Shown here piece after piece: positions 1-63,978 of a stretch of 64,000 bases of DNA (positions are counted from its first letter, which is position 1; the number at the start of each line of letters is the position of its first letter). Location of the stretch: assembly GCA_022605425.2 (NCBI GenBank), contig CM061255.1, forward strand, positions 558,001-622,000, given 5' to 3'. Both the position numbers and the translations under genes were made by a program. Below the pieces are notes generated by a model. That model made no database searches and was not told the DNA's origin. It saw only the letters and a program-made list of their open reading frames with translations. Source of the stretch: Hamiltosporidium tvaerminnensis FI-OER-3-3 (lineage: Eukaryota; Fungi; Microsporidia).

Positions 1-3000
1 CAACTTGTTGCAATTTGTATTTTTTCCTTTTATAATCACGATACATTCAGGCGTTCTTCTAAAAGATGCTTCATATCACTTAGATCAGTTTAATTCGGTT
101 CACGAATTTTATTCTTTGGAAAAACAACGAACATTTATAAAGAAATACTGCAACAATTTTTTTCTAATCAAAATTAAAAAAAATAATTTTATGAAAATAA
201 TCGTGTACTTTTTGAAGTTTAGGGTAGTACAAACAACATACCTTAAAGCATTGCTGATTTGACTACAAACATTAAACTAGGCACATTTTGCCAAATACTT
301 ATCGAGTTATTAAAGTGACTATAGAAGTTATACTTGTATTAATATTAATCAGGTTATGTAATAAATAATGTTAGTTTCGTAAAATTATTAAAATTACTAA
401 TTTTATCAAGCCTTATTCATAATGTATAGAATAATCAGGTTGTCTGCACTATATAATTTTATTTACTTTTACAGAACCGCCATATGTATTGTAAAAAGCC
501 TTGATTTCAAATAACTTATATTAATTTAAAAATTTTTATTACTTCACAAATACGCTCTTGATTCATTAGAATTGATCATAGTTGAGATTGATGGTATTCT
601 ATAAATTATTTGAAATGTTACTATGCGCTTCTTAATAGTACGTTGTAAAAAAAATATTTTTAAAGCTTATAATTTTTAAAGGTAGTAAGTAACTATCAAT
701 GTGCTAATTTTTAACAGTAAGATTGCAACCGATTATTTATTCAGAGTTCGATTTTAATAATGTTTCTCTTTTGTTATTAATTAGAGATTTCATTTTTGTA
801 CTATCAATTCATTTTGTAAAATAATGAATATTAAGAAGTACTAAAAACCAGGATAAACTTTTTCCTTAGTTGTTGTTAATTGCTGACATGTATAAAAATC
901 TTTAAAAATATATCGTTTAATATATAAAACGATGAAAATGAGGTTAAAATATGTATTTATCATAGCTGATTATAAATTTTAAAGTTATTTTCGACAAAAA
1001 AAGAAGGATTAAATCGATTGTATTCTTATATTTGTGATTTGTCAAATTATCAAGTTTTTATACTTTTATTTAATTTTCTTAAAAAAAATTTAATAGTAAT
1101 TTTTTTTTCTTGCATGAATATTTCAATTTTATATAAAAAGAATATTCTTGGTGTATGCATTCAGGATATGAAAGATCTTTTTATTGTACAAGATATTTAC
1201 GATACACATGAATGTGATATTTTAAAAGACATTATTCATACATTTGACATTCAAAAATGTTTTTATTCGTTGGATTTAAGTTTAGAGTGATATGAGTGTC
1301 TAGAAGAATGCCAGATAGAATTTGAAATGATAGTAACAAAAACGTATGAGAATTTGTCAGTAAAAAAACATTTAGAACAATTTATTGAAAAAGACAAATA
1401 TAAATTATCCATTTCGTGTTTATCATCGTTACTCATATTTTTTAATTGCCCAGAAATAATTAAGGAAATTATTGCCGATAACAAAAAAGTAAGTTGCGAA
1501 AATCGTTTTTTTGTCGGTAAGAAGGTAAAAACAGTAGAAACAATTAAAGATGAACGCCAAAATAACTTTAGAATGTGTAAACTAATAACATCTATCGGTG
1601 TTTATAATATTCATTTGCTTGATTTGCGTGAAACACTATTTCTTTCGCAATCTACAATGAAATCACTCTATTTATTGAAGGAAAAAAGACATCCGAATAT
1701 TAATATCTCAACTAAAAAAGATTTTTCTGTTATTGAAAAAATAGATTTCACTCAAACCACCATGGGGAAATCTCTTTTAAAGTTGTGGGTAAATTTTCCC
1801 CTTTTAAACATTAAAAAAATTAATGAAAGGCGAGAAATTATAGATTATATCATAAATAATAGTTTACAGACAAAAACAACCCAATTTTTAAAGATGTGTG
1901 TGTGTTTAGAAAAAAACAATAATAATTTCTATCAAAAAAACAAAAAAAGCTATTTTTTCAAACTAAGAAAATTTTTAATGGCATCTTATGAAATTACAAA
2001 ATTATTTAAAAACGTTTTTCAACATGATACAGATTTTATATCTGATCTTATTTATGAAATTGATAGTAAACTAGATTTAAATGCCAAAATAAATTCTGTA
2101 AGTAATAAAGATCGAAAAAATATAAATAAAACCAATTCAAATGATAGCATTCTAATTCCTTTTGATAAATCTAAGGGGAATAATATATTAAATGAATTTC
2201 ATACATTCCTTGACGATGATAGTTATATAGGCAAAACCAATATAAATTTTAATGATATAGATGATAAAAATGTATTTATTATAAAAGAAGGTATTATTGA
2301 GCACTTAGATACCTTAAAAAAAACTTTTAAAGAACTTCCAGAATATTTAGACTGCATTGCTAAAAAAGTATCGAATGAAAAAAATATAACCGTAAGTATA
2401 ATATATTATCCTCAAATCGGATATCTAATTGAAACAAAATCGAATATAGAAGAATGGATCTGTAAATTTAAAATTAAAGAAAATTATTATTATAAAAATG
2501 AATTTATGAATGATTTAGATAGTGAACTGGGGGACATTTTAACACAAATATATGATATTGAACTAGAAATTTTGAATTCGATTCGAAACAAAATAGTCAA
2601 AGAAAGAAGAAAGCTTGATTCTTTGATAGATTATATTGCTATCGTAGATTGTATAAATTCTTTAGCGACATCTGCCATTAAATATAATTTAAAGAAGAGC
2701 GATATAATAGATAAAAATATTTTTGAATTTAAAGATTTGCGTTGTATTTTGAACTTTGATTTTTATGGTTTCGACTTTACTTTAGATTCAAATTGTATTT
2801 TGACAGGCCCGAATTCTTCAGGGAAAAGTTCTTTATTACGTACGATCGGTATATCAATAATTTTAAATCAAATCGGTTCATTTATACCATGCAAGCAGGC
2901 ATCAATGAAACTATTTGATAAAATCTTTACAAAGATGGCATCCAACGAATCTTTAAACTGTAACAGAAGCGCTTTTGCTAGCGATATGTCTTTAGTGAGA

Positions 3001-3959
3001 GAAGCTTTGAATTATGGATCATCAGATTCAATCTTTTTAATTGATGAACTTGGAAAAGGAACAAATATCATTGACGGCACTGCTTTATTTTTATCAATTT
3101 GTAAGAATTCAAGGGATATTTTGGTTATTTCCACTACACATTTAATGGGATGGCTAATCGATAACTTTAATGAAAATAAAACCATTGAAGTTTTAAATAC
3201 AAAAGAAACCCCATCTAACGCCTCGGATCAGAATACATTTAATACAAAATATGCGGTATCTAGTGATGAAAATTCAAAATCAACAAGCATAGAAGCACTA
3301 AATGAAATTTTTGATTGCAAAAGAACAAAAATTGAAACTGAAAATAATAGAAATACTTCTGATTCATCAAGTCAAATTATATCTAAGGATAAAGAATTTA
3401 ATAATTTAGAACTTTCATATATTAATGAATCTGCCTGCTTTAAAAACAAAAATATATTTATCACAAAATCAAAGGATGATTTATCTGGAATTTTAATTCA
3501 AATTTTCGATAATTACTGCTTTAAAATGCTTGAAAAACAGATCAGTTCTAAAAAATACACAATTAAAGATGGAATATGCACCGAAAGTCTTGGGTTAGAA
3601 CTTATGCATAAATTTAATTATCCTGCTAGTTTCTATGATGAATGTATAGAACTAAAGAAAAAATTAAGCCAAAAATATTTTAAAAATTTAAATATGCAGG
3701 AAAATGATAATAACTGGGCTGTAGAAATTATAAATGATGTTATTTTTAATGCCAAAAATACATAAACTTCTGTACAAGATGCTTTACATATAAATAAAAA
3801 CCGAGAATATAAAATGTATCTTTTATTCAACAATTTATCTCCTAAAACAATTTTCGAAATTATTTTTTTATATCATTCATTATTACGCCGAGAATGCTAA
3901 AAATAAAAAGTCAAATTTTATTAATTTATTTTTGTCTTTTAGTCAATACTTTCTGTAAA
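1..3959 (+). repeat. Left arm of ~4 kb inverted segmental duplication containing MSH5 (partner 60022-63978)
   Basis: Position 1 (CAACTTGTTGCAATTTG) is the reverse complement of ~63962-63978. High identity runs through the MSH5 ORF to TTCTGTAAA at 3951-3959 / 60022-60030. The arm may extend left of the window. Confidence 0.97.
1114..3765 (+). pseudogene. MSH5: MutS homolog 5 (meiotic), copy 1, premature TGA at 1288-1290
   Basis: Walker A TGPNSSGKS, Walker B LIDELGKGTN, STTH and YYPQIGYLI match MSH5 rather than MSH4 (GPNMSGKS/DELGRGT). ORFs 1018-1290 and 1327-3765 are in the same frame. The TGA corresponds to CGA (Arg) in copy 2. First ATG is at 1114. Confidence 0.85.
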
Positions 3960-4569
3960 AACTTCAATTGCAAAATAAAATATTTGATAAAGTTTTTATT
4001 TTAACTTATTTAATACTTTTTATAAATTAAAAATTGCTCATAAAAATATAAATTTTTAATTTGTATGACAAATATATTCTATGATAGAAATATTTCTAAA
4101 TAAACGAATTTTTTTGTATATATTATGAATCAAGTTTAATTAACGAATTTTAAAGATGTTTTTCGTACGAAGCCCAAATATTTATATGTGTAAAAATGTG
4201 GGACTATATGTGTGAGTTATGACTGTCACAGCAGAGGCTATTTTTTATTATGAAGGTATATTAACTAAATGGTTTTATTATCAGATTTTTATTTAAAGAT
4301 GCCACAGTATCTATTTGTAGGTTAAAATTTGTTAATTAGGATGCGATAATTTAAAGGCAATAAATATAAAGCGTAAGTTTAAGTGTGATATTGAATTAAT
4401 AAATGAACAAAGAGTTTTAATATTAGTTGTAGTAACTTAACAGGTTGTAATAGAAGTGAAAAGAAGAAAAAAGCTTTATTAGAGATCGGCATGGTTAAAT
4501 TTGTAGTAGTTATTTTTTGCTTCGGTCTATCACATTTTATCGTTTTTCTAAAGTGCGGAAATATTTTTA

Positions 4570-6042
4570 ATTGGTAGTCAATCAGCGAATTTTTACCAAA
4601 AATGTCATTGGATTTGGAAACAGTAAGAATACAATATGCAATTATACTTTGAACTGGAGTGTGCAAGATCGCTCAAATATGTTAACTTACTATATATTAT
4701 TTTGGCTCGTTTCTTTCCCTAAGGATGAAACAATTTCACGAGTAAATCATGGTTACACCATGTTTTAGACGTTCCCTAGACTTTCTTCATTAACTGGTTA
4801 GGTTGTCAGTCTAACCCAAACTTTCTGGTCGAAAAAAAAAGATTGCGTCCACCGGAAATCGAAGCCGGCCTATCGGAATTAAATTTCGATATCGTACAAA
4901 CTAAACCATTGTCGCAACTTACAATGTTATACATATACAAAATGACCGATAAAAATGTATTGAAAGAGCTTGATCATACACTGCATTATTTGAAAGAAAA
5001 TGTGCAACACTTTGGTGGGGCCCAAATTTTATTGTCTGGTGGCATTGGTTAAGCTTTACCATTAATTCAGATTCGAAATTTGCTGATGAGCTCAATGCAT
5101 GTCTTAAACCCTCGGTTTAATACAAAACGCACTGAAACCGACTTTAAAAAACAATACATTGTTCAACTATAAAATGATCCATCCGCCGAAATTTTCGCAA
5201 AACGATTTGTATATTGAAAATAGGAAGATATAAATGACGGATATACACATGTATCACATTTTATGCTAAGTTTTGTGAAATAGGATTAACTGATGATCAA
5301 TTGGTTCAAAACGTTTCCGTAGATATTACCATAAATTACAAAACTCATCAGCGGCTCAGTGAACCTACTATATTTGCCGTTGCCAACAATGATATGAGTG
5401 CCATGAATTTCAAAATTCCAAATGGAATATTGGGAGAGGATAACCATACAAGTTCATCGATACTGTTAAAACAAGACGACATTGTCAATTATGCAACGAA
5501 ATCCTTGAAATTACCGGATTATTTATAATTCATTGCATATTTTGGTATTCAAACTTGGAGACCTATCATTCTTCTGCGACATATAAATCCGCTATAACTT
5601 GTAACCACACAAGACTTTAATTAAAAAAATTTCATGAAAATTTCATATAGCCCAATTTTGAATCAAAATAGCAGATATTCTGTCGCCATCAATTCTAATA
5701 TTTTTCATTTATGGAACTGAACACAAAATCTTTACAGTTTAATAGAGCTTGCCTTTTCATTTACAATAATATAACAACAGGAAAAATCTTTGCGATTTCG
5801 CAAAAAAATTTTATGAAATGTGATTTCACTTGGATAAAACTAGGTGGCCGCTTAACGCGTGGGAAAAATTTTCGATTTACTCGACTGCGGCGAGACAAAA
5901 AAACAAACCATATTGTTTATCCAGAAAGCTCTCAAATAAATAAATAAAAAACATTAAAAAAAATCTTCGAAGTGATGTTAATTTTTGTTTCCTTAGATTT
6001 CCATTGTTTAATTTTCGAAGCATCGCGCGATAGGTAAACTAG
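4570..6042 (+). mobile_element. Degenerate, internally deleted Helitron (Rep/PIF1 helicase remnants with intact 3' end)
   Basis: Fragments LKELDHTLHYLKENVQHFGGAQILLSG, ADELNACLK (~5083-5109), PIILLRHINP and KTNHIVYP match Helitron PIF1 helicase motifs. A palindrome ATCGCGCGAT (6022-6031) precedes CTAG|T (6039-6043), the canonical Helitron 3' terminus. The 5' boundary is approximate. Confidence 0.8.
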
Positions 6043-6326
6043 TAATATATAAGAAGGCATAATACGTGTTAATAACAGTCGTGGTAGTTATAAGGTTTTA
6101 TTTAATAAGACATAGAACATTATAAGATAACATTTTTTAATAAAAGCACTTGTATTCAAAAAAGTGTAATGAAGAGTAAACAGAGTATTCTTGGATATAA
6201 GTGTTAATTACTGTACTAAGTAATGTAGGATTATCATAATAAAGAACATGATTTTTATGGTTATTTTTAATTACGTTATATATATTGTATTTCCTTATTT
6301 AATCTGTTAAATTCTTTACCCTATAA

Positions 6327-6794
6327 ATGGAAGAGTCAATATTAGAAAGAATAAGATTATTAGAAGAAATATTAAAAGAAGTAAAAGATAAAGAAACAGT
6401 AAAAGAAATATTATCACAGAAATATTTAATGCTAAATAGCGAGAATGTCTATAAACATATAAATAATAAACAGAATGTTGATCGATTTGATGAACAGAAA
6501 ATAAAAAATTCAAGTAAAAAAGATCTTACTAAGTATTTATATAGTATTATTGAAAAAAGTAGAGAATATAAAAATGTTGTAGAAAATTTTAAAGAATGTG
6601 GAATAGAAATTTCTGGGATTAAAAGTAACAATGTATGTCCTATTACACTAAAAAAGATAGTGGATTTGTATGTAGGTGAGTGTGGACATAAATTTGAAAG
6701 AATTGCTGTTTCAGAACTTAGAAAACAAAATAGAATATGTCCCGTTGTAGGATGTAGTAAAGTTTTAAGAGAAAAGGTTGAAAGGAACGAATAG
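6327..6794 (+). CDS. NSE2: E3 SUMO ligase Nse2/Mms21-like (SP-RING zinc finger, Smc5/6 subunit)
   Basis: C-terminal CPIT...CGHKFE...CPVVGC SP-RING signature after a helical N-terminus; CCC motif upstream (ACCCTATAAATG). Confidence 0.8.
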   Translation: MEESILERIRLLEEILKEVKDKETVKEILSQKYLMLNSENVYKHINNKQNVDRFDEQKIKNSSKKDLTKYLYSIIEKSREYKNVVENFKECGIEISGIKSNNVCPITLKKIVDLYVGECGHKFERIAVSELRKQNRICPVVGCSKVLREKVERNE

Positions 6795-9059
6795 GTGTGT
6801 GTTTTAAATTAAAAAAATGTTAAAAATTAGTGATTTTCTGCTAGAAATATTTCTTAAGGAATTAATTTTGTTATACTGGTTTTTAATCAGGTGAGAAACA
6901 AGGAATACAGAATTTAAAGTTAAGAAAACAAAGCCGTCAATATTATAAATCTTTTTTAAAAAGTAATATTGCATGGCGAATAAGATATGTGTGTTTTATT
7001 GGCGTTAATATCAATATTTAGGTTTTTTAAAGAATTTAATTCTATATTTTGTTTATTGGAAAATTGGTCGAATACACTAGAAATAAAAATTTATAAATTA
7101 AAAAAAAATATTGTAAAAATCATGATAGCTACTATTTTTTCTTTAATAGGAAGGGATTTGTATAAAAAAACAACTAACTTTAACAATTTTATGACAATAA
7201 AATAAAATATAAAATATTTATTTAACGTGTTGAGATTAGGTTCTATGTGATAACTTGGGATTATTTTATGATTAAATATTGTAAGAAATACTGTATAAGA
7301 CTTTAAATATTTAGGAATACAGAGGATATTTTGTTTATAACCTAAGAAGACTGTCAAAACAATTCTTTTGGATCATCTAGATAGATTTTAATCGAGATCA
7401 ACTTCCGAAGTGAACAATAGGTTTTTAAGCGTGTTATTTAAAGAGTTGAAAACATGAAAAAACGATAACCGCTTGATAACGAATAAGTAGCCACGAAGAT
7501 GGTGTTGAAATCGTAGAAGATGGTATATCTCTTTATTCTATATCGAATCACATAAGTTGAACCGACAATAAATATAAATAAAGATTTGGATTTAGAAGAT
7601 GACTTTTATAGTTTCAAAAAGGTAAAAGAAAATCTTTTAAACCTAGCAATTTATTAAATATGTATTTTTTAGAGACATTTCTACTATTGATAAATCTTTT
7701 ATAGATACACTACATTTTCTAGATATTTAAATATTTCTATGATATCATAGATCGAATCTATATTTAAATACTACGTGATACTAATTTATATTGTATTATA
7801 TTTTCTTAATTTTAAGTGGTGGTTGTTATGCCTACGGCTACTTCTGACAAATCAATCAAGATTTACGGGTTAAAAATTCAATGTTTTGAAGACATAATGT
7901 TTCGGTCAACATTTCCACGAAAATAATGTTCTACATAATCAGTAAAGAGATAACATTTCGAAGATAATGGAATACCTTTTATCAATAAAATTTTCAAAAT
8001 AAAATAATTGATATATTCACATAATGAGATATACTGTATGAATTAAGGACAACCTATTTGTCAAGAAATTTCGATTACATACTTTATTAAATATGTTTAA
8101 GGGAAATATTAAATTAGAGCTTTGCTTTCTTTTGAAAAATAATAATTTGTAGAGACTAAAATTTCAAATCATTATAAAATTTTGTTTAATTTGTTTTTAG
8201 TGATTATTAACTAATTTTTTTCAGTTTTTTGGCGTCCGGCGGTTAAATTTTACAGTTTCTAAGTTTTTTATTTGAAAGAATTTTCTAATTATTTAGTTAT
8301 AAATATTGCGACTCGAAGTTTAAGCTCTGAAACCAAAATATTCTAAGTATAAGAATGAAATCTTATGCGCAAAATTAGAACTTTAAAGTATTATAAAAGA
8401 GAACTGTATCTTAGCAAAAAAATCCAAAGTAAATTTTGATCACGTATGCATTTATAATAAAAAAGGATGTTTTTCTGGCTAAATAGGTATCTTAGTCTCT
8501 TATATGACTGTACATTGACCCATAAAATATGATATATACCTTTTTTATATTTATCATGTAAATAAATTGATTCAGTAATTTTAAAAACTTGTCGTAAAAA
8601 AATTTATACAAAAATGAACAAAGAAGTATCACATAACTTTTTATGAGGTTTTAATAGTTATTAAAATAAATGTTATATTCTTCTGGCTGTTTTCTTCAAA
8701 TTTCATTTATTTTAACGCAAAAATTTGAAAAGTACCATTACAATCTTCCTAATATTCTTAATAATTTTATAAGTTTTTTGCGGGTTTAGATGATCCAGTA
8801 CTAAATAAGATAAAGTATAAAGTCAAAAGGAACAATCTCGGATTGTATATGGCACTAGAAATAAAAAAACTGGGCGTAACAAAACTAATGGGTAAAAGTC
8901 TTGCTTTATCTAGATCGTTAATCGGAAGGGGTAAGAATAGCTAATTTAGTCGTCATAAATAGAATTTAGATTATAAAAATTGAATAAAAAATTTATTACT
9001 TATAAAATGTATTGATATTATCGATCAGCATGTTCACATATTTCATAATAATTAAGGTT

Positions 9060-10340
9060 CTATTTATTTTTAACTACTAACAAATCAATTATTGTAATGC
9101 AAAAAATTCCAATTCCAACAACAAAAATGAAGTACGAAAGAAATGAATAAATGTTTCTTCTGTTATCATTAGAGCGTAAATAAAACAAAGCCGGTAAAAT
9201 AAGACACATAAGTGTAGAAGCCGTAGCCCCAATTATTGTATAAACAATTCCTAATTTTATATCTTGGCTGACAATTAAATAAGTAGCAATAATTAGAAAT
9301 GTGGTAACGATTCCATTTATTATAGTTTCGGAGAGTGTGGTTGTAGTATGGCTCGTAGGAAGATTAGTATTTGTAATTTGATTGGTATTGGAAATACTTG
9401 CTATATCTAAATTTGTATTTCTATAATCGGTTCTAGTTGAAACATATTCCATGTTATTGTTATATTTGGGCATAAACATATAACAAAAGTACATCCGAGC
9501 AGGAATAATTTGAAGGGGATATGAAAACCCCATTACTATAACATAAAGGAATTGTATAAGGATTCCCAGGGTATCTGATGAATATCGTTGCAGAATATTG
9601 TCAGTAACTGATGAAGAATATAAAAGGTAGTTTGACAGCCCAAAAGTGGTATAAGCAATAACTGCAGTTAGAATTGTTGCAAATATTAGTCTTATAAGAT
9701 TTCTTGTGGAATTATTAGGCAATTCATTTCTGACAGAAAAAATATTTTGATGACAAGTAAATGCAAATACTAATTTACCCAGTCCTTCTATCCATTTGGA
9801 TGAAAAAGAAGTGTAAAGAACAGGTGATTGAATCGGTGAAGTAAACAAACGATATATCGATGTTAAAATCACAATAAAAATAGCAATTATACCACATGTA
9901 GATGTATATTTTAAATTGTTAAGATTACGGAAATAACAAACAGATGCGATTATTGCCAAATAAATAGCTGTAGAAGAGTTAGCCTGTGTTAATAAATTTG
10001 ATCCAAATACTGGCTGTAAAACATTAGGCAGCAATTGTCTAATTATTATCAAATATGAAGTACCCACACCGAAACATTTTATAAAAATACCAAAATCCAC
10101 AAGAAATTTGAGTTTTGGAAAATTTTCACTGCAAAGCATCGATATACTAGAAGATCTATCATATTTCTTACTACAAAACATATAAAGCAATAAGCCCGAT
10201 GCACTAAAACATGCGGAAAAAAGTGTTAAGATAAATGCTGGAACAACTCCATAGGTACTAAATATACTTGGGAATGTCAGTATTCCACTTCCCATAGCTG
10301 TTTTCAAAAGATTTATATATCCTGAAAAAAAACCGTTCAT
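9060..10340 (-). CDS. Amino acid transporter, AAAP/Aa_trans family (Avt5/6/7-like)
   Basis: NLLKTAMGSGILTFP, IKCFGVGTSYLIII, VFAFTCHQN and SYPLQIIPAR motifs; many hydrophobic transmembrane segments; 426 aa. Confidence 0.92.
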   Translation of the reverse strand: MNGFFSGYINLLKTAMGSGILTFPSIFSTYGVVPAFILTLFSACFSASGLLLYMFCSKKYDRSSSISMLCSENFPKLKFLVDFGIFIKCFGVGTSYLIIIRQLLPNVLQPVFGSNLLTQANSSTAIYLAIIASVCYFRNLNNLKYTSTCGIIAIFIVILTSIYRLFTSPIQSPVLYTSFSSKWIEGLGKLVFAFTCHQNIFSVRNELPNNSTRNLIRLIFATILTAVIAYTTFGLSNYLLYSSSVTDNILQRYSSDTLGILIQFLYVIVMGFSYPLQIIPARMYFCYMFMPKYNNNMEYVSTRTDYRNTNLDIASISNTNQITNTNLPTSHTTTTLSETIINGIVTTFLIIATYLIVSQDIKLGIVYTIIGATASTLMCLILPALFYLRSNDNRRNIYSFLSYFIFVVGIGIFCITIIDLLVVKNK

Positions 10341-11032
10341 AATATTAATATCAAATTTTTTTTTATTTATTTTGAATTATTTGTTTTTTTATGACACATT
10401 GTTTCAGAAATCTATAGATTTTGTTTTTAAAAATCTTATCTAGGTTTTTTATTGGTAAATATGTTATCTATTGATTAATATATTTATGAAATATATAATT
10501 TACGTACAATAAAATATCTAATTAATTGTATAAGATTATGTTTTGAATGGATAAACCAAACTTAGAAAAAATATTTACTATGGTAATTTACAATTTTCTA
10601 AGAATAGTAAATGTTTAACATGTCAAAAATAAATTATTACCTGAAACTGATTTTTTAAATAATAATTTTAGAATATATGTATAGTTTGATTAAGGCTTAA
10701 ATATATAAATTTTGATATGTTAAATTAGTATATATATGATGTATAGTTATTGCAAAAATAAAATATAATATATTAAATATAAGCCAATACTTTGATATAC
10801 TTCCATATGTTCATTCGATAATCTATGAAATGAAAAAAAGGTTGTTTTAAAAGATTACAAAAAAATAGAATAATAAAAGACTCTTTGAAATATATCTTTC
10901 TATTATTTATTTTTCGAAATACTATGCATTTATCTATCAATCAAATAAAATATAATTGTAAGAGCTAAAAAAACGGATAAGATTAATCCAAAATTTTTAT
11001 AAAGCATTAACGCAAGTATAGCTTATGATTTT

Positions 11033-11266
11033 GCCCACATAGTTTCGGGAATAGATTTGGCTTGGAGTATTCTCTGCTTGTCGTAATATGCGATTAAAAG
11101 GGATTAATCCTCCAAGTTGGGCGTAGGGCTAACAACCCACCCTTTAAAAATACCTTTTTACGAAACCAGAAATTGTAAAAAAAATCCACTGTATAAAGAT
11201 CTGATGCGGAATTACTGAAGGAAACAAAGACTCTTGCAGGCTATAGTGCCTAGGATGAATGAATGA
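11033..11266 (+). mobile_element. Short non-autonomous retroposon, RTE-derived (bipartite, SINE-like)
   Basis: Flanked by a 15-bp direct repeat ATAGCTT(A/T)TGATTTT (11018-11032 / 11267-11281). Internal CTGCTTGTCGTAA and TTGGGCGTAGGGCTAACAACCC resemble RTE 5' UTR motifs. GGCTATAGTGCC plus a (TGAA)n tail resembles RTE 3' ends. Confidence 0.7.
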
Positions 11267-25350: not shown

Positions 25351-25363
25351 TATAATTTTAAAC

Positions 25364-51191: not shown

Positions 51192-51337
51192 TCAGATTGA
51201 AGAACACCACTAGAGGAACTGATAATAAATATAAACGAAGAGTCTGATTTATAAGAAGAAAAGATGATGGTATAAGAAATAGAAGGAAATAAATAGAAGT
51301 TTGATGAAATATTTTAACCCAAAAATACATTATTTTT
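51192..51337 (+). mobile_element. Extremely 5'-truncated RLE retrotransposon 3' end, interrupted by the Ginger-like element
   Basis: ACCACTAGAGGAAC...AAACGAAGAGTCTGATTT...ATATTTTAACCC matches the subfamily A 3' end. TTAAATAA resumes after 53408. Probable TSD ATGAAAT(T/A)TATTTTT at 51173-51187 / 53416-53430. Confidence 0.7.
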
Positions 51338-53408
51338 TGTCACGGCCAATAAACCGCCCCATGTCCAATAGAACCCCCGTTATTTTCTATATATTTTAAT
51401 ATTACTGACATTCTTTATTTTTTAAAATAGCTCTATAATTTCTATACCCTTATAACCTATTTATTTCCTAATTCCTATACATCTTCTTATTTTAGTCTCT
51501 ATTCCAATACTTCTTATCCATTCTTTCTTAATATTTCTTTTGTATGAACAATAGGATGTGTTAATAATGAATAAAATATTCAATAAACTTTATATTTTTC
51601 TTTTCAGTTCTTTTTTTGTATTTTTCAGTTATTTGCATTTGTTAGTATTTGTAAGGCGAAATTTCGTTGTAGAATTTGATACAGGCACTAAACAACATAA
51701 AATTCAATATACATTTGATTAATGGTTTCCTATTATCTGTTTTTTTTTTAAGTATTCAGTTTATATATATATAAAAACAAAATGTAACCAAAATGCCAAA
51801 GATCATAAGTGGTAAAAATAGACAAGAAAAAGAAATTATTACAACATTTTTAAAAACCGGTCAATATCCAGCTTAGTTTAAAAAAAAGGGGTTGTTGAGG
51901 CAGAAAGCAGAACATTTTACTTTGCTCGGAAATGATATTTGTTTAAAAAGACCGATCATCTAATAAGAGCCGTTTTTGGATTTGAAACTGCCTTGATTAA
52001 ACAAATTATTCAAACAGAGCTTGCTGTTGCACACATCGGAGTAATTAGAATGATGGCTTTGATTGTACAAAAATACTATGGGATTCCCAAGGCATATATA
52101 AAAGAGTATGTAAAAGACTGTGAAGCATGTAGTGGATTCAATTCTCTAAAAAAAATTCAGCTAGTATATATAAACCATATTACCAAAAAATAAGATCTAT
52201 TTATGATGGATTGTGTAGATCTCAGGATATATAGTGATCGAAATGATCAATATAGCTGGATTCTTAATGTAATCGACACATACACAAAACATCTCTGGAG
52301 CTTTAAGCTGATTAATAAAACTTCGAAATTAGTAAGAGATTCATTAAAATTTTTATTTAACAACTTTGGTGTCCCGGTGACAATACAATCCGATAACGAT
52401 CAAGAGTTTAAAAATGCACTACTTGAAGCCTTTTTAACAGATCATAACATCAGAATTATACATGGAAGACCACGCAATTCGAAGGCGCAAGGTCAAGTGG
52501 AACGTGTAAATCAAACCATAAAAAAATGGCTAGCGAAGAAATTACATGAAACAGGTGGAAGAAGCTGGATTGAACATCTTAGTAATGTTGTTTATGCCTA
52601 TAACAGAAGAATACATGGTGCAAAAAACAAATCACCATTTATGTTTTTCTTCAGACAACCAGGTTTTACCAATCCACTTTCTGGAAGCATAATATTTGAA
52701 TAAGAAGCCAGTACGATGGTACTTACTATTTATGTAGATCCTGATATAGTTTGAGTCGAAGAAAATCAGGGAAAACACAATGAAGCCTAGAAATTGCCTC
52801 GGATGTACATGAAGAATTTACTGAAACGGTAACACTATAATAATTAATGATCTTGAAATCGATAGTAAGATTCGTTCGGATGTGGCTAAGCATTTTAAAA
52901 ATTATAGAGAAATAATTATAGAAAGCAACAATTCAAATAGACACAAGAGAGATTTGTCTACTGGAGATTAAGTTTTTTAAAAAAAAGAGCTAGATATGAA
53001 TACTAACTAAAAGAGCGCCTTTTGTCTCTTTTTACGATAATTCGGTTTTTACAGTTACCGCTATTTTGATGAACAACATGATTGAAGTAAAAAACAATGA
53101 TGGTGACATCAGAACGTTTTTTGAGGCGTAACAAAACGTATTTAATTTAATTTACTTGCAATTTTTTTTGACATTTTTTATTACTTAAGTATTATCATTA
53201 AAGTTTTATTTTTCTTCTGGCAAAACTTGAAATATTTTTTTTGGCGGGAAATTTAAGTTAAAAATTATATAAGCATTTTTTAAACAGACCCCTCCTATTA
53301 AATTTAGAGAAAAAATCACTTCCTTTTTTAAAATATATGGCCCTTAGGTAAAATATATCAAAATAACGGGGGTTCTATTGGACATGGGGGGTTTATTGGC
53401 CCATGACA
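51338..53408 (+). mobile_element. Ginger-like DNA transposon with pseudogenised integrase-type (rve) transposase
   Basis: ~48-bp TIRs TGTCA(C/T)GG..CCAATAAAC..CCCCATGTCCAATAGAACCCCCGTTATTT. ORF pieces 51793-52703 contain a zinc-finger remnant (AHIG...CEAC) and a DDE core (DCVDL, IQSDNDQEF, AQGQVERVN), with in-frame stops. No clear TSD. Confidence 0.88.
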
Positions 53409-53439
53409 TTAAATAATGAAATATATTTTTACAATCATT

Positions 53440-56400
53440 TACCAATGAGTTATGTAAAAAACCCAAATTTACACTATCTAAAACTTATTATCGTGTAATA
53501 AAACTGAAAAATTAAAATTTTTAGGGGTCAAAATTATTTTATTTTTATGCTTTTTTTTATCAATTTACAATTTAAAATTATTTTTTTTTTATTTAATAAA
53601 TTCTGGGTTAACAAATTTTTCTTTTTAAATAATTCTTTCCACCATTTCAACCACTTCTATTTCTTCCTCCAACTCCAACTCTTCATTTGTATTAGTTGTT
53701 GGTTCCTTTGCTGTGGTTATGCCATCCAAAATAAGGGGTAAAATATTTTTTGTATTTTCCGTTTTAACATCATCTTCCTCGTTGTCTACTTGCTTTAAAG
53801 GGGGTATTGGTTGTTTATGCATCTCAGCTCCTAAGATAACACTTAATGATGCTCTCTCCCAGCTCTCCTCGGCATTTGGACCAGACTCAAGTCCTCTTCG
53901 TCGATCAAAAGAAATTGTTTCGACTGTCTTCTTGAGTACTATGGATTGTATATATGCCTCTACATTCATGGGTATTTGCAGTCTCTTAACATACGTCTTA
54001 TGGTATTTTGTCACAATACCGTCCCAGGTCATCACATAAGGAATTATCTCTACATTGCATTTATAAATAAGACCTAACTCATTTTCTAATAGGTCATACT
54101 TCCTAAGCTTCTCTGTTTCAACTATTTGGAGAGAGTCTTGGGATGTGATTCCTACTTCAATGAGGGTTATCCTATTCTGTCTCTTGTCTAAAATAAATAT
54201 ATCTGGTCTGTTACACCGAATCTTGACATCAGTTTTTATTCTGGTGTCCACTCTTATCTCTGCATATTCGTTATCAAGAATTTCTTGAACTGAGTGGCTT
54301 CTAATTCGTTTCGAAGACTTAAACTTATATTTATTCAGCAAGAGTAAATGTATACATCGTACCACTTCATTATGTCGTCTAGTATAGTCATGACCAAGCA
54401 TTTTTTCACATCTCGTTGCTGAGTGATCAACAGTTTTCCTAGACTGGTTGCAGTGTTGACACATACCTTCTGCACCCCAGAATACATTTCTCTCCTGGAT
54501 ATAACAGAACACTGCTTTATCAAGTGGTCTTACACATCCTTTCTTTAACCATCTTGAGGAGTCATTTACACTTACCAGCTCGTTATTTCTAGCGCTATAT
54601 AACTTTGAATGTAGTTTTCGGTTTTTGATTTCGTTATATAGGTTAGCTAGTTGAGCTTCTTCTAATTTATTTTTTGTGACTTCCTCTTCCAACCCGTATT
54701 TTATTTTTAAAAAGTTTTTAATTAGTGAAAGGTGGGTTTTATTATTATTCTCAACCTTTAGGATTGCTGCTCTTCTGGTCGATGTATCTTTATGTTTTTC
54801 CAGACAATCCAAGAGTTGCAAAAGCATATGTTCGCTTTTGAACTCGACACTATGTAAACCTCTTCCAAGTTCTTTACGTGGAAGTTATAGACGTTCTTTG
54901 CATCCTGGGCGTAGATGTATTTTGTTCTTTACTAACACTGCACGCACCGCATCATCTAACTTAGAGAAGTCAGCCGGTTCAAGTCGGAGTACACCTATAT
55001 GATAGTTTAGTAAAGAAATTGCATGTTGATTAATGGCTTAAAATAAATTTCTTGCATTTAATCTCGTGCGACAAAGTCTTTCTACTCGTGCTATAAGTTT
55101 GGTCTGTACTTCCTCAAACGACTTACTTGTTTGGATTCCTCTGCTATCTTCTATAATTCCAAGGTATTTATAAACACCTATTCCTTCAAGAAGAGTAGCA
55201 GTATCTTCACAACATGGATCATTAGTGGCTGACTTCTCTTTGTTAATTTCCAATCCTATATTATTCATAAACTTTTTAACCTCCACCGTCATTTCTTCCA
55301 ATGTTTGTCCATCTTCGGCAAGGAGCTTAAGATCATCAATAAACAAGAGATGATTAGTCGCGTGGGATTCTGCATCTGTCTTTATTGTCACTTTTGTGTA
55401 TTTCTCATTAAGCTTTCGGCTCAATGGATCCATACACAACACAAACAATAATGGTGACAAACTATCTCCTTGCAGAATCCCTCTATCAATCTTCTTGCTC
55501 ATGATTTTTTCAGGCCCTATTGATATATCAATTTTCCATTTTGATATAATTACCTTAATAAATTTCAGGATCCAATCAGGTAAATTAAGGTTTTCAATGC
55601 ATTGAGTCAAATAAGCATGATCTATTGAATCATAAGCTTTTTTGACATCAATCCATGTTGCCTTAAGATTGTTTCCGTACTCTTTATTAATGGCAATATT
55701 CAATAGGCCTGTTCTTTCGCTCCTTGCACTCCTCTTACTGCTCCCAACTGGTTTTCTGAAAGTAATCCTCGTCTTTCCACCTCAATCTGTACCACTTTAG
55801 TAACACATTTTGTAGTTAGTTTATACAGATTTGACATACAGGTTATTGGCCTGTAATAAGAGCCAGTCTTTGGTGTACCTTTAGGTATCAGATAAGTAAG
55901 TCCACAATAATACCAATCGGCTTGAGGCGTTCCTTCTAAACATATGGCTTTCACAATATCGTAAAGATATTTATGAAGGCTCGTAAGTTTCTTGATGTAA
56001 AAGTTATAAATACCATCAATTCCAGCGGCTTTCCAGTTAGGCAGCCAATTGATGATATCTATAAACTCTTCAAGTAAAGGAAACGTGGTCTGGTGCGTAT
56101 CTGACACGAAAGGTATCAAATACTCATCATATGTAACTACTTTATCATTTTTATTCCACATTGTAGACCAAAATTCTGAAATTTCGTCACGATAAACCAC
56201 ATGCTCGGATTCAACGCGCTCAGATAACCCTCGATAGAATCGACCTCGGAATATCTCAAACATACGATTCTCTTTTCGAAATTTTCTCCTACTTTCATAC
56301 ATCGTAATTTTTTTCTCGTACACATTCAAAGCCTCATTCTTCTTAACCAAAGCCTCAGAGAGATCATTTATTTTGCTTAAGTCTAAATTAAACTCTCGCA

Positions 56401-58515
56401 TAATTTTTCTGAGACTTTTCGTTTCCGAAGTAGAGAGCTTTTCCTGCTTGCGAGCCTTCTCGAGGAGATCTTTGGAAAGTACTAACTTAGAAATTTTACA
56501 TTCTATGTTTTCCTTCCAAGCGAATCTAGGCTTCTCCTTACGCGTTTCCTCGTCCTAGCATACCTTGGCCGCCTGGATGATTCGAGCTGCATCACTAACA
56601 TTCTTAGGCACATGAGATTCAGCATATTCACCTGTGATCCGATTTATGATTCCAAAACTTTACTATCAACCAATTCACTTGGAAGTTTTCTAGTTCGGAC
56701 CACTACATCTCCGATTTCCTTCTCCGAGAGTTCCTTGATTTTGCACAAGAACTTTTCTCTCAGGTTCATATAGAGTGTAGTGTCAGTTAAAGAACATGGC
56801 TCGGCGAGACAAGTGGCGATTCTACGTCGCTCTCCATTCTCTTCTTCCCTTATTTCTCTTTCTGCCTCATTATGTGTTAATTTTTTTAACACATCGATAT
56901 CAACAGTTCGACCAAATTTCCCATTATAGTACCTAAGAATTGCAGACCAGCCATTTCTAGGCATTCTCTCAAACCTTTTTTGCACTGCTGAAATAGCAGA
57001 TCTAGGCCATTCCTGCTCTACGGCTGTGACAGAGTCAAGTATTGAATGCAATACCATCAGTCGATTTACTTCTGGAATGACAGGGGCATTGAGGTTTTCC
57101 ATTGTGTTGGCTGGTCTACGCGCAGACGAATCGGGACAGGAAGAAGGGAGTGCGGAATCGAGCAGGTTGATTGGAGTAGCCTGAAGCGTATTGCTCGATG
57201 GGGAGTGGGTGTTATTATAGATGGTCGGTTGTGGTGGAAGCGTCTCGGATATAGTTACTACATCTCTATCACACGTTTTTATCTCTTTAAAACTAATTTT
57301 CGAGTTGTTTACAGCATTTATTTCATCATTTTTTATATTTTCGCTGTCAACTTTTTTTCTTCTACCCATTATTTAAAATTAAAAAGTTAAAATTACAAAA
57401 TATATACAATTTAAATATATATTTAAATTTCGCTTTAAAATTTCCTACACAAAATTAACTAAATTTTCTATTTATATGTTACTTGTTAACAGTGGAAAAC
57501 TATTTATTTAAACTCTAAAATTCAAATAAGAAATGACAGAGACTTAGAGGATAATTTTTTTATTTGAACAACACGATTTGATTAAATCATGTTTTGTTTG
57601 TAATAGAACTCTGAACGGTTTAATTCTTTCTTTAGGAAAGATTTGTTTCCGGTGTATGTTTTGTGATAAGAAATATACTGAATATTGTTTCGGTGCAATG
57701 AAAATTTAAAAATTGGAATTCATGGTGTAGGTTATATCATTTGGGGATTTACATTTGAACTGCCATATGATGTCAACAAAGCAATGTATGTTTTTTTAGA
57801 TGCAACTATGGCAGACTCTATTAAAGACTTGTGATTGCTAATATAAAACAATTGCTTGTATTCCTTTGAGAAAATTGATGGATCCGGAGAAATAGTGGAA
57901 TTAGATGAAGCTGCTATATGCAACGGAAGGTATAATAGAGGTCATCTCATTGGCCAACATTGGTGTTCTGAGCTATTTCGAGAAAGACATAGAGGGTTTA
58001 TATGCAAATTGTTCCAAATAGAACGTTTAGTGGTTTAAAAAATGCTGTATATAATCACATCTCCCCAGGAAGTACAGTATATTCCGATAAACACCGGGTA
58101 TGCCTATGAATATAGAGAGAATTAATATTTTTCTTATAATATTGTGAACCATGCAACAATTTTGTATCAGAATCTGGTATTCATATTCACGATCGAAAAA
58201 TAATGGTCTAGATTCAAAGGGTTTAAAACAAAACATAATTTTAACAAAAGGCTTAGTTGAATGATTACATTTATGAATACATTTTCAGGAGGAATCATCG
58301 ATGTAAGGCACGAAGCGCACAATTTTTAAAATTTTTTGAACTTTTTATCAAATAAAGTGGATAATATTTTACATGATTTTTTCAATTAAAAATAATTGAC
58401 AAAAAAGGAGTAAAAATTTAGAAATTTTAACCCTTAAAAAGTTTTATTTTCCCTCGAGCTTTCATAAAAAGTCCAACCGAAAACTTTGTATAAGTAGAAA
58501 AAGTCTCATTTGTAA
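53440..58515 (+). mobile_element. Merlin (IS1595-like) DNA transposon remnant, interrupted by the subfamily B retrotransposon
   Basis: Transposase fragments KIDGSGEIVELDE...YNRGHLIGQHW, IVNH..NFVSESGIH, WSRFK and YIYEYIFRR at ~57540-58290. Degenerate inverted repeats: AAAATTTTTAGGGGTCAAAATT...TTTATCAATT (~53505-53566) vs the reverse complement of ~58393-58452. Outer limits are approximate. Confidence 0.72.
53581..57370 (-). mobile_element. Full-length but disabled RLE non-LTR retrotransposon, subfamily B
   Basis: ORF pieces 56644-57369, 55700-56401, 55038-55703 and 53625-54827 are homologous to the 1253-aa ORF. Poly(A) tail at 53581-53590. 11-bp TSD ATTTAAAATTA at 53570-53580 and 57371-57381. 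Confidence 0.95.
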
Positions 58516-60021
58516 TATTTTAGAAAATTGAAATATAAATAAAAATTTCATAAAATTTTTTTGTTTTTTGATTTTATTTCTGTATTTTTTCATATTATAT
58601 ATGATCTCTTATTATATTTAGTATAATTTGAGGAGATGTTTAAATTATAGCACAAAATAATTTAGAACGAAAAATATATACTTAAACGAGTATTAAGCAT
58701 TTTTCTAAACAGAGGTGATACTTAAACTGATCTCTAAATCTATATTAAATTAGGTGTTTTTCTACCATTTAATACACTTATTTGCTTGTTTAAATCAATA
58801 TATGCATCTATAAATCAAATACAAGGGTATAAAATATTCCATTGAAGTTTTTACTGCTCTATTGAGATAAAAAGTTTTTTGATAGTTTTTGGTCCAGTAA
58901 AGATATAATATTCTTCATAAGATTCTGTTCTTGTATTATTTGTCAAATCGTAACAATTTTTCAAAATATATTATAATATATAGCAATTTCCAGTTCATTT
59001 TTAATTTGAAGCAATATCACTGGCATCTTTTTGTCTGGTTTCTTAAGTTCTACTGCATATAACTGATTTTCAGTGAATTATAAATATTTTATCACAATAA
59101 TTAAATTATTCAAAAGTAAAAGCTTTTAAATAATAAAAAACAAATATTCTAGCTTTTAATCAATTAACCCAAATTATCTATTTCATTTAATAATTTACGT
59201 GACGGAATTTTAAATTTGTATTGAAATTTATAACTTAAGCAATATTTTCTAGAATATTTAAGTAACATTTGGGTTTAAAAGATCATAAATGAATAATTTA
59301 GGTACGTAAGTTAATTAATAAAACCATTTGCCTTATGATATTCATTGAAAATATATTGGTAACATTTATCGTTTTAAGTTAGAAAAAATATAAATTTTAA
59401 CCTGTTTATTCCAAAAAAGGTTTAATTTTTTTCAGGTGAAGCAGTCCTCATTACCATTTTCTCATCATCAAGAATATTCCCTTTTAACACCACCAGACCA
59501 CCTGCAAAAAAAATCATTTTTAATAATAAAAAAATATGTTTACTTTTTATAGTATTTTTTGCTTTCAAATGCTAGAATATTTTTACTTGAATTTCAAAAA
59601 AAATAAATAAGAACCGTGATGTAACAGATATAATAGTAAATTAAATCCCTAGTAATATCCTGAACTCTGCTAAAACATGTCAGAAGGCTTCCGTTATTTG
59701 TTTATATTTGTAAAAAAACATAGGTTCGAAAATAAATAACAACAAAATCTTGTAATAACTTGTGAAGCAATTAATTTTTTTAAAAATTCATGAAAAGGTA
59801 AAAAAAATCTTAATTTTATTTTTAGTTTAAATTCGTTCGTTATCTTATTTATTAAATTTGATTTAGATATCCGTAAGAACTTACAAAATCTTCAATATTT
59901 GTTAATTAAACTTAAATTCAATAAAATATACTATGATTTTGATTGATTTATATAATTTCTATTCATAGAATATATTTGTGATCCGAAATACAAGTACATA
60001 TTTTCATGCTAAGTTTTAGTA

Positions 60022-63000
60022 TTTACAGAAAGTATTGACTAAAAGACAAAAATAAAATTAATAAGCTTTGACTTTTTATTTTTAGCATTCTCGGCGTATA
60101 TAATGAATGATATAAAAAAATAATTTCGAAAATTGTTTTAGCAGATAAATTGTTAAATAAAAAATACATTTTATATTCTCGGTTTTTATTTATATGTAAA
60201 GCATCTTGTACAGATGTTTATGTATTTTTGGCATTAAAAATAACATCATTTATAATTTCTACAGCCCAGTTATTATCATTTTCCTGCATATTTAAATTTT
60301 TAAAATATTTTTGGCTTAATTTTTTCTTTAGTTCTATACATTCATCATAGAAACTACCGGGATATTTAAATTTATGCATAAGTTCTAACCCAAGACTTTC
60401 GGTGCATATTCCATCTTTAATTGTGTATTTTTTAGAACTGGTCTGTTTTTCAAGCATTTTAAAGCAGTAATTATCGAAAATTTGAATTAAAATTCCAGAT
60501 AGATCATCCTTTGATTTTGTGATAAATATATTTTTGTTTTTAAAGCAGGCAGATTCATTAATATATGAAAGTTCTAAATTATTTAATTCTTTATCCTTAG
60601 ATATAATTTGGCTTGATGAATCAGAAGTATTTCTATTATTTTCAGTTTCAATTTTTGTTCTTTTGCAATTAAAAATTTCATTTAATACTTCTATGCTTGT
60701 TGATTTTGAATTTTCATCACTAGATACCGCATATTTTGTATTAAATGTATTCTGATCCGAGGCGTTAGATGGGGTTTCTTTTGTATTTAAAACTTCAATG
60801 GTTTTATTTTCATTAAAGTTATCGATTAGCCATCCCATTAAATGTGTAGTGGAAATAACCAAAATATCCTTTAAATTTTTACAAATTGATAAAAACAAAG
60901 CAGTGCCGTCAATGATATTTGTTCCTTTTCCAAGTTCATCAATTAAAAAGATTGAATCTGATGATCCATAATTCAAAGCTTCTCTCACTAAAGACATATC
61001 GCTAGCGAAAGCGCTTCTATTACAGTTTAGAGATTCGTTGGATGCCATCTTTGTAAAGATTTTATCAAATAGTTTCATTGATGCCTGCTTGCATGGTATA
61101 AATGAACCGATTTGATTTAAAATTATTGATATACCGATCGTACGTAATAAAGAACTTTTCCCTGAAGAATTCGGGCCTGTTAAAATACAATTTGTATCTA
61201 AAGTAAAGTCGAAACCATAAAAATCAAAGTTCAAAATACAGCGCAAATCTTTAAATTCAAAAATATTTTTATCGGTTATATCGCTCTTCTTTAAATTATA
61301 TTTAATGACAGATGTCGCTAAAGAATTTATACAATCTACGATAGCAATATAGTCTATCAAAGAATCAAGCCTTCTTCTTTCTTTGACTATTTTGTTTCGA
61401 ATCGAATTCAAAATTTCTAGTTCAATATCATATATTTGTGTTAAAATGTCCCCCAGTTCACTATCTAAATCATTCATAAATTCATTTTTATAATAATAAT
61501 TTTCTTTAATTTTAAATTTACAGATCCATTCTTCTATATTCGATTTTGTTTCAATTAGATATCCGATTTGAGGATAATATATTATACTTACGGTTAATTT
61601 TTTTCATTCGATACTTTTTTAGCAATGCAGTCTAAATATTCTGGAAGTTCTTTAAAAGTTTTTTTTAAGGTATCTAAGTGCTCAATAATACATTCTTTTA
61701 CAATAAATACATTTTTATCATCTATATCATTAAAATTTATATTGGTTTTGCCTATATAACTATCATCGTCAAGGAATGTCTGAAATTCATTTAATATATT
61801 ACTCCCCTTAGATTTATCAAAAGGAATCAGAATGCTATCATTTGAATTGGTTTCATTTGTATTTTGATCTTTATTACTTACAGAATTTATTTTGGCATTT
61901 AAATCTAGTTTACTATCAATTTCATGTATAAGATCAGATATAAAATCTGTATCGTGATGAAAAACGTTTTTAAATAATTTTGTAATTTCATAAGATGCCA
62001 TTAAAAATTTTCTTAGTTTGAAAAAATAGCTTTTTTTATTTTTTTGATAGAAATTATTATCGTTTTTTTCTAAACACACACACATCTTTAAAAATTGGGT
62101 TGTTTTTGTCTGTAAACTATTATTTATGATATAATCTATAATTTCTCGCCTTTCATTAATTTTTTTAATGTTTAAAAGGGGAAAATTTACCCACAACTTT
62201 AAAAGAGATTTTCCCACGTTGGTTTGAGTGAAATCTATTTTTTCAATAACAGAAAAATCTTTTTTAGTTGAGATATTAATATTCTGATGTCTTTTTTCCT
62301 TCAATAAATAGAGTGATTTCATTGTAGATTGCGAAAGAAATAGTGTTTCACGCAAATCAAGCAAATGAATATTATAAACACCGATAGATGTTATTAGTTT
62401 ACTCATTCTAAAGTTATTTTGGCGCTCATCTTTGATTGTTTCTGCTGTTTTTACCTTCTTACCGACAAAAAAACGATTTTCGCAACTTACTTTTTTGTTA
62501 TCGGCAATAATTTCCTTAATTATTTCTGGGCAATTAAAAAATATGAGTAACGATGATAAACACGAAATGGATAATTTATATTTGTCTTTTTCAATAAATT
62601 GTTCTAAATGTTTTTTTACTGACGAATTCTCATACGTTTTTGTTTCTAGCATTTCAAATTCTATCTGGCATTCTTCTAGACACTCATATCGCTCCAAACT
62701 TAAATCCAACGAATAAAAACATTTTTGAATGTCAAATGTATGAATAATGTTTTTTAAAATATCACATTCATGTGTATCGTAAATATCTTGTATAATAAAA
62801 AGATCTTTCATATCCTGAATGCATACACCAAGAATATTCTTTTTATATAAAATTGAAATGTTCATGCAAGAAAAAAAAATTACTATTAAATTTTTTTTAA
62901 GAAAATTAAACAAAAGTATAAAAACTTGATAATTTGACAAATCACAAATATAAGAATACAATCGATTTAATCATTCTTTTTTTGTCGAAAATAACTTTAA

Positions 63001-63978
63001 AATTTATAATCAGCTATGATAAATACATATTTTAACCTCATTTTCATCGTTTTATATATTAAACGATATATTTTTAAAGATTTGTATACATGTCAGCAAT
63101 TAACAACAACTAAGGAAAATGTTTATCCTGGTTTTTAGTACTTCTTAATATTCATTATTTTACAAAATGAATTGATAGTACAAAAATGAAATCTCTAATT
63201 AATAACAAAAGAGAAACATTATTAAAATCGAACTCTGAATAAATAATCGGTTGCAATCTTACTGTTAAAAATTAGCACATTGATAGTTACTTACTACCTT
63301 TAAAAATTATAAGCTTTAAAAATATTTTTTTTACAACGTACTATTAAGACGTGCATAGATACATTTCAAATAATTTATAGAATACCATCAATCTCAACTA
63401 TGATCAATTCTAATGAATCAAGAGCGTATTTGTGAAGTAATAAAAATTTTTAAATTAATATAAGTTATTTGAAATCAAGGCTTTTTACAATACATATGGC
63501 GGTTCTGTAAAAGTAAATAAAATTATATAGTGCAGACAACCTGATTATTCTATACATTATGAATAAGGCTTGATAAAATTAGTAATTTTAATAATTTTAC
63601 GAAACTAACATTATTTATTACATAACCTGATTAATATTAATACAAGTATAACTTCTATAGTCATTTTAATAACTCGATAAGTATTTGGAAAAATGTGCCT
63701 AGTTTAATGTTTGTAGTCAAATCAGCAATGCTTAAAGGTATGTTGTTTGTACTACCCTAAACTTCAAAAAGTACACGATTATTTTCATAAAATTTTTTTT
63801 TTTAATTTTGATTAGAAAAAAATTGTTGCAGCTATTTCTTTATAAATGTTCGTTGGTTTTCTAAAGAATAAAATTCGGGAACCGAAGTAAACTGATCTAA
63901 GTGATATGAAGCATCTTTTGGAAGAACGCCTGAATGTATCGTGATTACAAAAGATAAAATACAAATTGCAACAAGTTG
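60022..63978 (-). repeat. Right arm of ~4 kb inverted segmental duplication containing MSH5
   Basis: Reverse-complement match to 1-3959 with scattered substitutions and small indels. Confidence 0.97.
60218..62865 (-). pseudogene. MSH5: MutS homolog 5, copy 2, 1-nt deletion near 61596
   Basis: Copy 1 AAA AAT ATA ACC reads AAA AAT TAA CC here, ending ORF 61594-62961. The ATPase half continues in another frame (60218-61477). CGA is intact at 62689-62691. Confidence 0.85.

Follow-up and report, generated by a model that had tools for sequence, protein, structure and literature searches.

The 64,000-nucleotide stretch of DNA analysed here, hereafter called the window (G000:C10:558001-622000), lies on scaffold_16 of the Daphnia-infecting microsporidium Hamiltosporidium tvaerminnensis FI-OER-3-3 and holds two copies of a gene that its sequence identifies as MSH5, one in each arm of an inverted duplication, neither of which is intact. 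The left copy is interrupted by a premature stop codon and the right copy by a frameshift accompanied by an in-frame deletion of three nucleotides; the same lesions are found in a second isolate of the species, and both copies are open in the sister species Hamiltosporidium magnivora. MSH5 pairs with MSH4 and stabilizes the intermediates of meiotic crossover. We consider, with a probability of roughly 0.78, that the inverted duplication is old and that its two redundant MSH5 genes were inactivated separately, each by mutations of its own, in a lineage that has been called asexual. From these observations we infer that functional MSH5 is absent and that asexuality is the cause. The divergence between H. 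tvaerminnensis and H. magnivora is well below 1% at single-copy genes (MSH4, for example), yet both MSH5 copies appear to be defunct in the asexual species and are intact in its sister. The lesions are a testable candidate for the genetic basis, or for an early signature, of asexuality, and also a marker that can be genotyped across existing global sample panels. Public annotations mask them: a spurious 24-nt intron covers one, and the rest are presented as shortened “proteins”. In the searched literature, the coverage of which is incomplete, we found no report of MSH5 lesions or of a gene-level meiotic difference between the two species.

Disrupted MSH5 copies in an inverted duplication

Scaffold_16 (723,150 bp) has been scored as a complete chromosome, telomere to telomere, and belongs to an assembly built from Oxford Nanopore Technologies (ONT) reads with an N50 of 32.7 kb and PacBio continuous long reads (CLR) and polished with 66 Gb of Illumina data (PMC10542269). 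Positions 1-3963 of the window match positions 60018-63978 in inverted orientation with 97.8% identity, 80 mismatches, and 6 gaps. When a flank of 10 kb was added on each side, the arms were found to run beyond both ends of the window (Table 1); the full arms are 12.4 kb each, have an identity of 96.9% and sharp ends, and are 56 kb apart. Both arms contain a reverse-transcriptase element resembling a long interspersed nuclear element (LINE) and then MSH5, directed inward. The inverted arms of ~4 kb proposed in an earlier note on this DNA are hence real as an inverted repeat in the window alignment but are longer than was thought, having been cut by the window; the ~56-kb interior and the inward-pointing MSH5 in each arm, both claimed in that note, were borne out by the repeat alignment with the added flank.

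Judged from its sequence, the gene is MSH5, a subunit of MutS-gamma. MutS_III (PF05192) and MutS_V (PF00488) were detected above the cut-offs in the left open reading frame (ORF) and in the intact H. magnivora protein, and the Walker A motif GPNSSGKS is present in both copies of the window. The mismatch-binding domain I (PF01624) gave no match in the intact 883-aa MSH5 of H. magnivora even at E<=1, while it does match the MSH6-like gene of the genome under study. The best matches outside the genus in the protein similarity search were Msh5 of Spraguea lophii and a spider MSH5, and a separate gene of 753 aa, named msh4, is located on another chromosome (C2). The left 812-aa ORF is also 100% identical to a protein named from H. 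tvaerminnensis. A search of the PDB for distinguishing MSH4 from MSH5 returned no MSH4/MSH5 chain among 37 matches, and the protein atlas placed MSH5 only in the general MutS II-V class. Genome-wide searches covered the FI-OER-3-3 assembly (21.64 Mb, 17 contigs), in which no third copy of MSH5 was found. In Edhazardia aedis, a related sexual microsporidium, the meiotic stage is accompanied by induction of MSH4 and MSH5 (PMC4435813), and it is by analogy with this species only that MSH5 of Hamiltosporidium would be expressed in meiosis and act in crossing over; none of the sequencing runs listed as containing the gene is an RNA run.

Table 1. Positions of the MSH5 copies, their lesions, and the surrounding elements, numbered from the first nucleotide of the window (negative numbers and numbers above 64000 lie in the added flanks)
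Feature	Positions	Strand	Remarks
Left arm, inner 3.96 kb	1..3963	.	Full arm at -8446..3963 (G000:C10:549555-561963)
Left MSH5, candidate pseudogene	1114..3765	+	883 codons and stop in the ancestral frame; 100% identical to the left copy of IL-G-3
Putative 24-nt GT..AG stretch over the stop	1280..1303	+	Modelled as an intron in the IL-G-3 annotation (TBU20697.1, 875 aa)
Left-copy premature TGA, R59*	1288..1290	+	CGA in the right copy and in all H. magnivora copies
Longest remaining ORF of left MSH5	1327..3765	+	812 aa; MutS_III and MutS_V, Walker A intact; the protein annotated by GenBank here
Interior, 56 kb	3964..60017	.	zf-Nse gene, amino-acid transporter, IRE1-like kinase/RNase, unknown ORFs, several LINE-like reverse-transcriptase elements
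LINE-like element with intact reverse-transcriptase ORF	20588..24349	-	1253 aa; a 90% identical copy in each arm
Right arm, inner part	60018..64000	.	Full arm at 60018..72411
Right MSH5	60218..62865	-	Split by the frameshift into ORFs 61594-62961 (N-terminal) and 60218-61477 (419 aa, ATPase part)
Right-copy 1-nt deletion	61596..61597	-	CDS position 1273, codon 425, in MutS domain III; TAA directly after
Right-copy in-frame 3-nt deletion	61865..61866	-	Specific to the right copy of H. tvaerminnensis; not mentioned in the earlier note

The reading frames of both copies confirm that neither assembled MSH5 is intact, as the earlier note had stated. The early stop that it had placed at 1288 in the left copy (CGA>TGA) was also found, with CGA in the right copy and in H. 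magnivora and TGA in the second isolate, IL-G-3. The 1-nt deletion that it had reported near 61596 in the right copy corresponds to one A missing at about 61597 and recurs in IL-G-3; because the context is tata>tta, this deletion is not an error in the length of a homopolymer.

Short-read evidence for both lesions, which the earlier note had called for, is provided by the independent assembly of IL-G-3, an isolate from Israel (prefix PITK), which was made with the Ray assembler from Illumina data only and contains the identical TGA, 1-nt deletion, and 3-nt deletion. Its left copy is located on a contig of 39.8 kb with the same inner flank (zf-Nse and the amino-acid transporter) and has a coding sequence (CDS) 100% identical to that of FI-OER-3-3 including the stop, and its right copy, on a contig of 14 kb, has the same 1-nt and 3-nt deletions. 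Because all the lesions recur in this independent Illumina-only assembly, they are not errors of base calling or assembly. In an older Illumina assembly of the Finnish isolate, furthermore, the contig PITJ01001999 matches the private variants of the right copy. The 1-nt deletion was also present in the Logan contigs of the runs X1 and X15 and absent in X20, which has a different organism label; these contigs are bubble-popped mosaics that collapse both copies and cannot be phased. Across four runs, each taken from a different study, Logan contigs had a k-mer depth over the arm of 1.6-2.1x that of the unique inner flank, which is what two collapsed copies should give, although such depth is not a copy number.

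Splicing was considered as a bypass of the lesions and rejected for both copies. As a reference for the intron consensus, 17 introns of H. tvaerminnensis confirmed by Iso-Seq were fetched, 13 of which begin with GTAAGT (or GTAAGC) and have CTAAT shortly upstream of the terminal AG. The GT..AG stretch over the left stop has neither GTAAGT nor CTAAT, and the newer Iso-Seq-guided annotation omits it, starting its left MSH5 model at the ATG at 1327 (812 aa); indeed, the authors of the new FI-OER-3-3 assembly note 890 introns in the older annotation and 98 with Iso-Seq guidance. In the right copy, the stretch in question encodes conserved residues and an in-frame TAA precedes the only nearby GTAAGT, which follows closely on the deletion; splicing is of no help there, because the stop comes before that site. 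Two half-proteins are also unlikely to work, since the frameshift is inside MutS domain III.

Sister species and other meiosis genes

In H. magnivora IL-BN-2 (prefix PIXR), the left and the right inner flank each adjoin an MSH5 copy of their own, and both copies are open over 883 codons, differing at 13 of the 2652 sites (99.5% identical). A partial contig of another isolate, H. magnivora BE-OM-2, is open at both lesion sites. Because both flank contexts hold copies in H. magnivora, the duplication predates the split of the two species; the H. magnivora copies being intact, therefore, all three lesions (stop, frameshift, and 3-nt deletion) are derived states found in H. tvaerminnensis only. 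According to population studies, H. tvaerminnensis is asexual with fixed heterozygosity and local loss of heterozygosity, while H. magnivora is possibly sexual (PMC6944219, PMC12376958). The proposal of the earlier note that a meiosis gene is being lost in an asexual lineage is thus supported by the asexual description of the species and the intact H. magnivora copies in the same context.

The coding regions of the left and right MSH5 differ at 54 sites and by two indels in H. tvaerminnensis, as compared with 13 sites in H. magnivora. By parsimony, the changes private to the left copy amount to 14 non-synonymous (including the stop) and 5 synonymous, with an omega of about 0.65 and a ratio close to the 4.3:1 expected for neutral change. 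These lineage counts, including those of the right copy given below, are small and carry little weight, as several of the “private” variants are shared with H. magnivora BE-OM-2 and are hence old polymorphisms.

Upstream of MSH5, left-type and right-type tracts are intermixed as a mosaic in the arms of both isolates of H. tvaerminnensis. A Finnish Illumina contig (PITJ01002568.1, L020) is of the left type with five right-type variants in a patch of 95 bp at 2708-2802, which reflects either gene conversion in the heterozygous state or a chimera made by the assembler. Given the mosaic tracts and this patch, therefore, exchange between the arms, or mixing by the assembly within the repeat, has occurred. 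We also noticed that the Finnish right copy has seven private substitutions within 233 bp (62212-62444 on the minus strand, CDS 422-654), which neither the left copy nor the right copy of the Israeli isolate contains and which are confirmed by a Finnish Illumina contig, two of them being shared with BE-OM-2; this cluster may come from another haplotype or from conversion from elsewhere.

Other genes of meiosis were found to be open in the FI-OER-3-3 genome, including MSH4, SPO11, HOP2, and MND1, for which the earlier note had suggested such a check. SPO11 has an ORF of 315 aa with a Toprim domain scoring 92 bits, and DMC1 (342 aa) scores 420 bits to human DMC1 as against 330 bits to RAD51. MSH4 is open with 753 aa in all five assemblies, and its divergence among four isolates is 0.3-0.6% with no species structure. 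A general collapse of the meiotic toolkit was hence rejected as an explanation. The two species separated so recently, however, that neutral lesions may not have had time to arise, and the open state of these genes is only weakly informative.

A second inverted pair of recombination genes is formed by RAD51 (G000:C1:1488211-1488942 on the minus strand and C1:1502204-1502935 on the plus strand; L017 and L018). Its members are about 14 kb apart and 99% identical over at least 3.1 kb, and the reading frames of both are open, whereas both are broken in the MSH5 pair. The MSH5 locus is otherwise like the other inverted duplications of Hamiltosporidium, which have kilobase-scale arms at 97-99% identity and a spacer of 10-60 kb, and long segmental duplications have been reported for the genus (PMC6944219).

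Two further MutS-like genes of the genome are split between reading frames. An MSH2-like gene (L004, G000:C3:645151-648516) consists of two ORFs in different frames, and a 32-nt stretch, GTAAAT...TTTTTAAG (1429-1460), that restores the frame is probably a real intron as judged from the sequence. An MSH6-like gene (L005, G000:C12:962799-967331), with domain I followed by domains III/IV/V, also has two ORFs in different frames, broken at about 1445-1500, where the only frame-restoring GT..AG (46 nt) lacks the intron motifs of the species; this break may reflect a frameshift, a pseudogene, an unusual intron, or an indel left over in the assembly.

Weighing of the explanations

In the explanation that we favor, an inverted segmental duplication with 12.4-kb arms and a 56-kb interior would have arisen before H. 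tvaerminnensis and H. magnivora separated, leaving their ancestor with two working MSH5 genes. In H. tvaerminnensis, the left copy would then have been disabled by the nonsense mutation and the right copy, independently, by the frameshift and the 3-nt deletion. One member of the redundant pair may have been lost neutrally and the other once crossovers were no longer needed, or the second loss may itself have helped to end crossovers. Fixation of both lesions would have followed, at the least in the lineage to which the isolates from Finland and Israel belong, and this pair of young pseudogenes would be a record of relaxed or lost selection on the crossover function, its inverted geometry being a by-product of the habit of this genome to duplicate segments. 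A known counterpart is the decay of meiosis genes in asexual eukaryotes (the “meiosis toolkit” of Schurko and Logsdon, as cited in PMC4435813), which is alike in that a meiosis gene is disabled here and intact in a possibly sexual relative. The present case differs in that MSH5 alone is affected, in both duplicates, with SPO11, DMC1, HOP2, MND1, and MSH4 open, and in that the species pair is very young (0.3-0.6% at MSH4), so that it would represent early decay or a specific loss of MutS-gamma. Four observations speak against our explanation: SPO11, DMC1, HOP2, MND1, and MSH4 give no sign of a general collapse of the toolkit; the right-private changes (by parsimony, 9 non-synonymous and 10 synonymous, omega about 0.21) look constrained; the left copy keeps its 812-aa ORF, from which an N-terminally truncated protein might be made; and the genome is heterozygous and its assemblies collapsed, which together with the mixing of both copies in the Logan contigs leaves room for an intact allele on the homologous chromosome. 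In a bolder reading, the double loss of MSH5 would go beyond an effect of asexuality and would itself be the causal or an early lesion, one that removed the crossovers depending on MutS-gamma while SPO11, DMC1, HOP2, and MND1 stayed under selection. If true, this would yield what population genomics infers for the parasite, “abortive meiosis or non-meiotic recombination” along with loss of heterozygosity; as the two lesions are in inverted arms, a rare exchange between them might in principle bring MSH5 back. We hold such a causal role to be possible but unlikely. An alternative is that MSH5 function is kept after all, through an intact allele on the homologous chromosome, the truncated left product, or occasional +1 slippage on the seven A residues before the right deletion, where one extra A would restore the frame; the slippage itself is conjectural. 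Heterozygosity in H. tvaerminnensis is indeed fixed genome-wide (PMC12376958), the left frame is open over 2.4 kb with an intact Walker A and is annotated as a protein by GenBank, the right-copy lineage has a low ratio of non-synonymous to synonymous changes, and MSH4, which has no known role in the absence of MSH5, is intact and nearly invariant. Nonetheless, the consensus sequences of the isolates from Finland and Israel, Illumina-polished in one case and based on Illumina alone in the other, have the same lesions, and no lesion-free allelic MSH5 contig is annotated in any H. tvaerminnensis assembly. A protein split within MutS domain III is not expected to work; the left-private changes, three of which fall within or close to the ATPase domain, appear neutral, and an open frame of 2.4 kb is unsurprising under neutrality with about 19 substitutions. 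Retained function is therefore judged unlikely.

The earlier note had proposed instead a flip/flop switch of a meiotic gene. In such a switch, crossing over between the arms would turn the 56-kb interior around and restore an intact MSH5 from the right 5' part and the left 3' part, switching meiotic crossovers on, and the reverse event would switch them off. The geometry was correctly described: the genes point inward with lesions 0.8-1.1 kb apart, and a single exchange between the lesions, that is, between 1288 and 2114 or 2386, gives one intact copy and one double mutant. Exchange over evolutionary time is also suggested by the homogenization of the H. magnivora copies, by the mosaic arms upstream of MSH5, and by the right-type patch in the left-type Finnish contig. 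Nevertheless, complementary lesions are not evidence of design, because any two different lesions in two copies give them, and both lesions are point mutations and not position effects. The inverted repeats that a switch would use do flank the segment (12.4 kb, 96.9%, around 56 kb), but the switchable state is not conserved, the ancestral and sister-species state being two intact genes with nothing to switch, and the arms are not kept alike: frequent exchange would have done so, whereas those of H. tvaerminnensis have diverged by 3%. The same broken configuration is present in both isolates and in both Finnish assemblies, and no intact recombinant was found among the contigs, those of Logan collapsing the copies. 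No contig of IL-G-3 or H. magnivora spans a whole arm, and the inner junctions are unchanged by inversion and thus uninformative on orientation. Inverted duplications with intact genes, such as the RAD51 pair, occur elsewhere in the genome as well. In methylotrophic yeasts (Ogataea and Komagataella), the mating type is switched by an inversion that leaves the genes intact and moves the locus beside silencing chromatin; the repeats involved are almost identical, and the segment is found in both orientations. The MSH5 locus is like that system in having inverted repeats around a segment that recombination can invert; here, in contrast, the genes are point-mutated, the arms are 3% apart, both copies are intact in the sister species, and only a single orientation has been recorded. 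We therefore find no support for a switch and regard it as highly improbable. The remaining proposal of the earlier note, an assembly chimera, belongs with base-calling or polishing errors and a misjoin of haplotypes into a false inverted repeat, and might be suspected of a long-read-based assembly of an AT-rich, heterozygous genome. It is, however, rejected as next to impossible: identical lesions occur in the Illumina-only assembly of IL-G-3, the Finnish Illumina contig PITJ01001999 has the private variants of the right copy, neither lesion is a change in homopolymer length, three assemblies from two species place each copy beside a distinct, unique inner flank, and the raised k-mer depth of the arms, not itself a copy number, recurs in all four runs, on top of an ONT chromosome complete from telomere to telomere.

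Neighboring elements and gene models

The LINE-like reverse-transcriptase family is represented in the interior by one intact ORF of 1253 aa (Table 1), and copies 82-90% identical to it are found elsewhere, including one at 53587-56845 and one in each arm. The arm copy is 90% identical to the intact element and is located just upstream of MSH5 (-3934..-143 in the left arm). A further partial copy, inverted, lies just beyond the outer end of the left arm (-9999..-8456), and the LINE-like copies around this arm end may be relevant to how the duplication was formed. The interior also contains an intact IRE1-like gene (34724-36988, minus strand), the 754-aa product of which has a protein kinase domain and a Ribonuc_2-5A domain.

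Some of the public gene models need correction. The H. magnivora model TBU07580.1 (1024 aa; PIXR01000299.1, L013 2303-6714) overruns the true stop of the intact 883-codon gene, while in the H. tvaerminnensis model TBU20697.1 (875 aa; L010 2472-5123) the premature stop is concealed in a false intron. In addition, two of the 17 published introns confirmed by Iso-Seq (L043, G000:C16:223195-223262, and L046, G000:C16:410871-410961) are located in direct or tandem repeats, the end of the exon repeating the end of the intron, and have no GTAAGT/CTAAT motifs; these two look like template switching or variation in repeat number and not like splicing.

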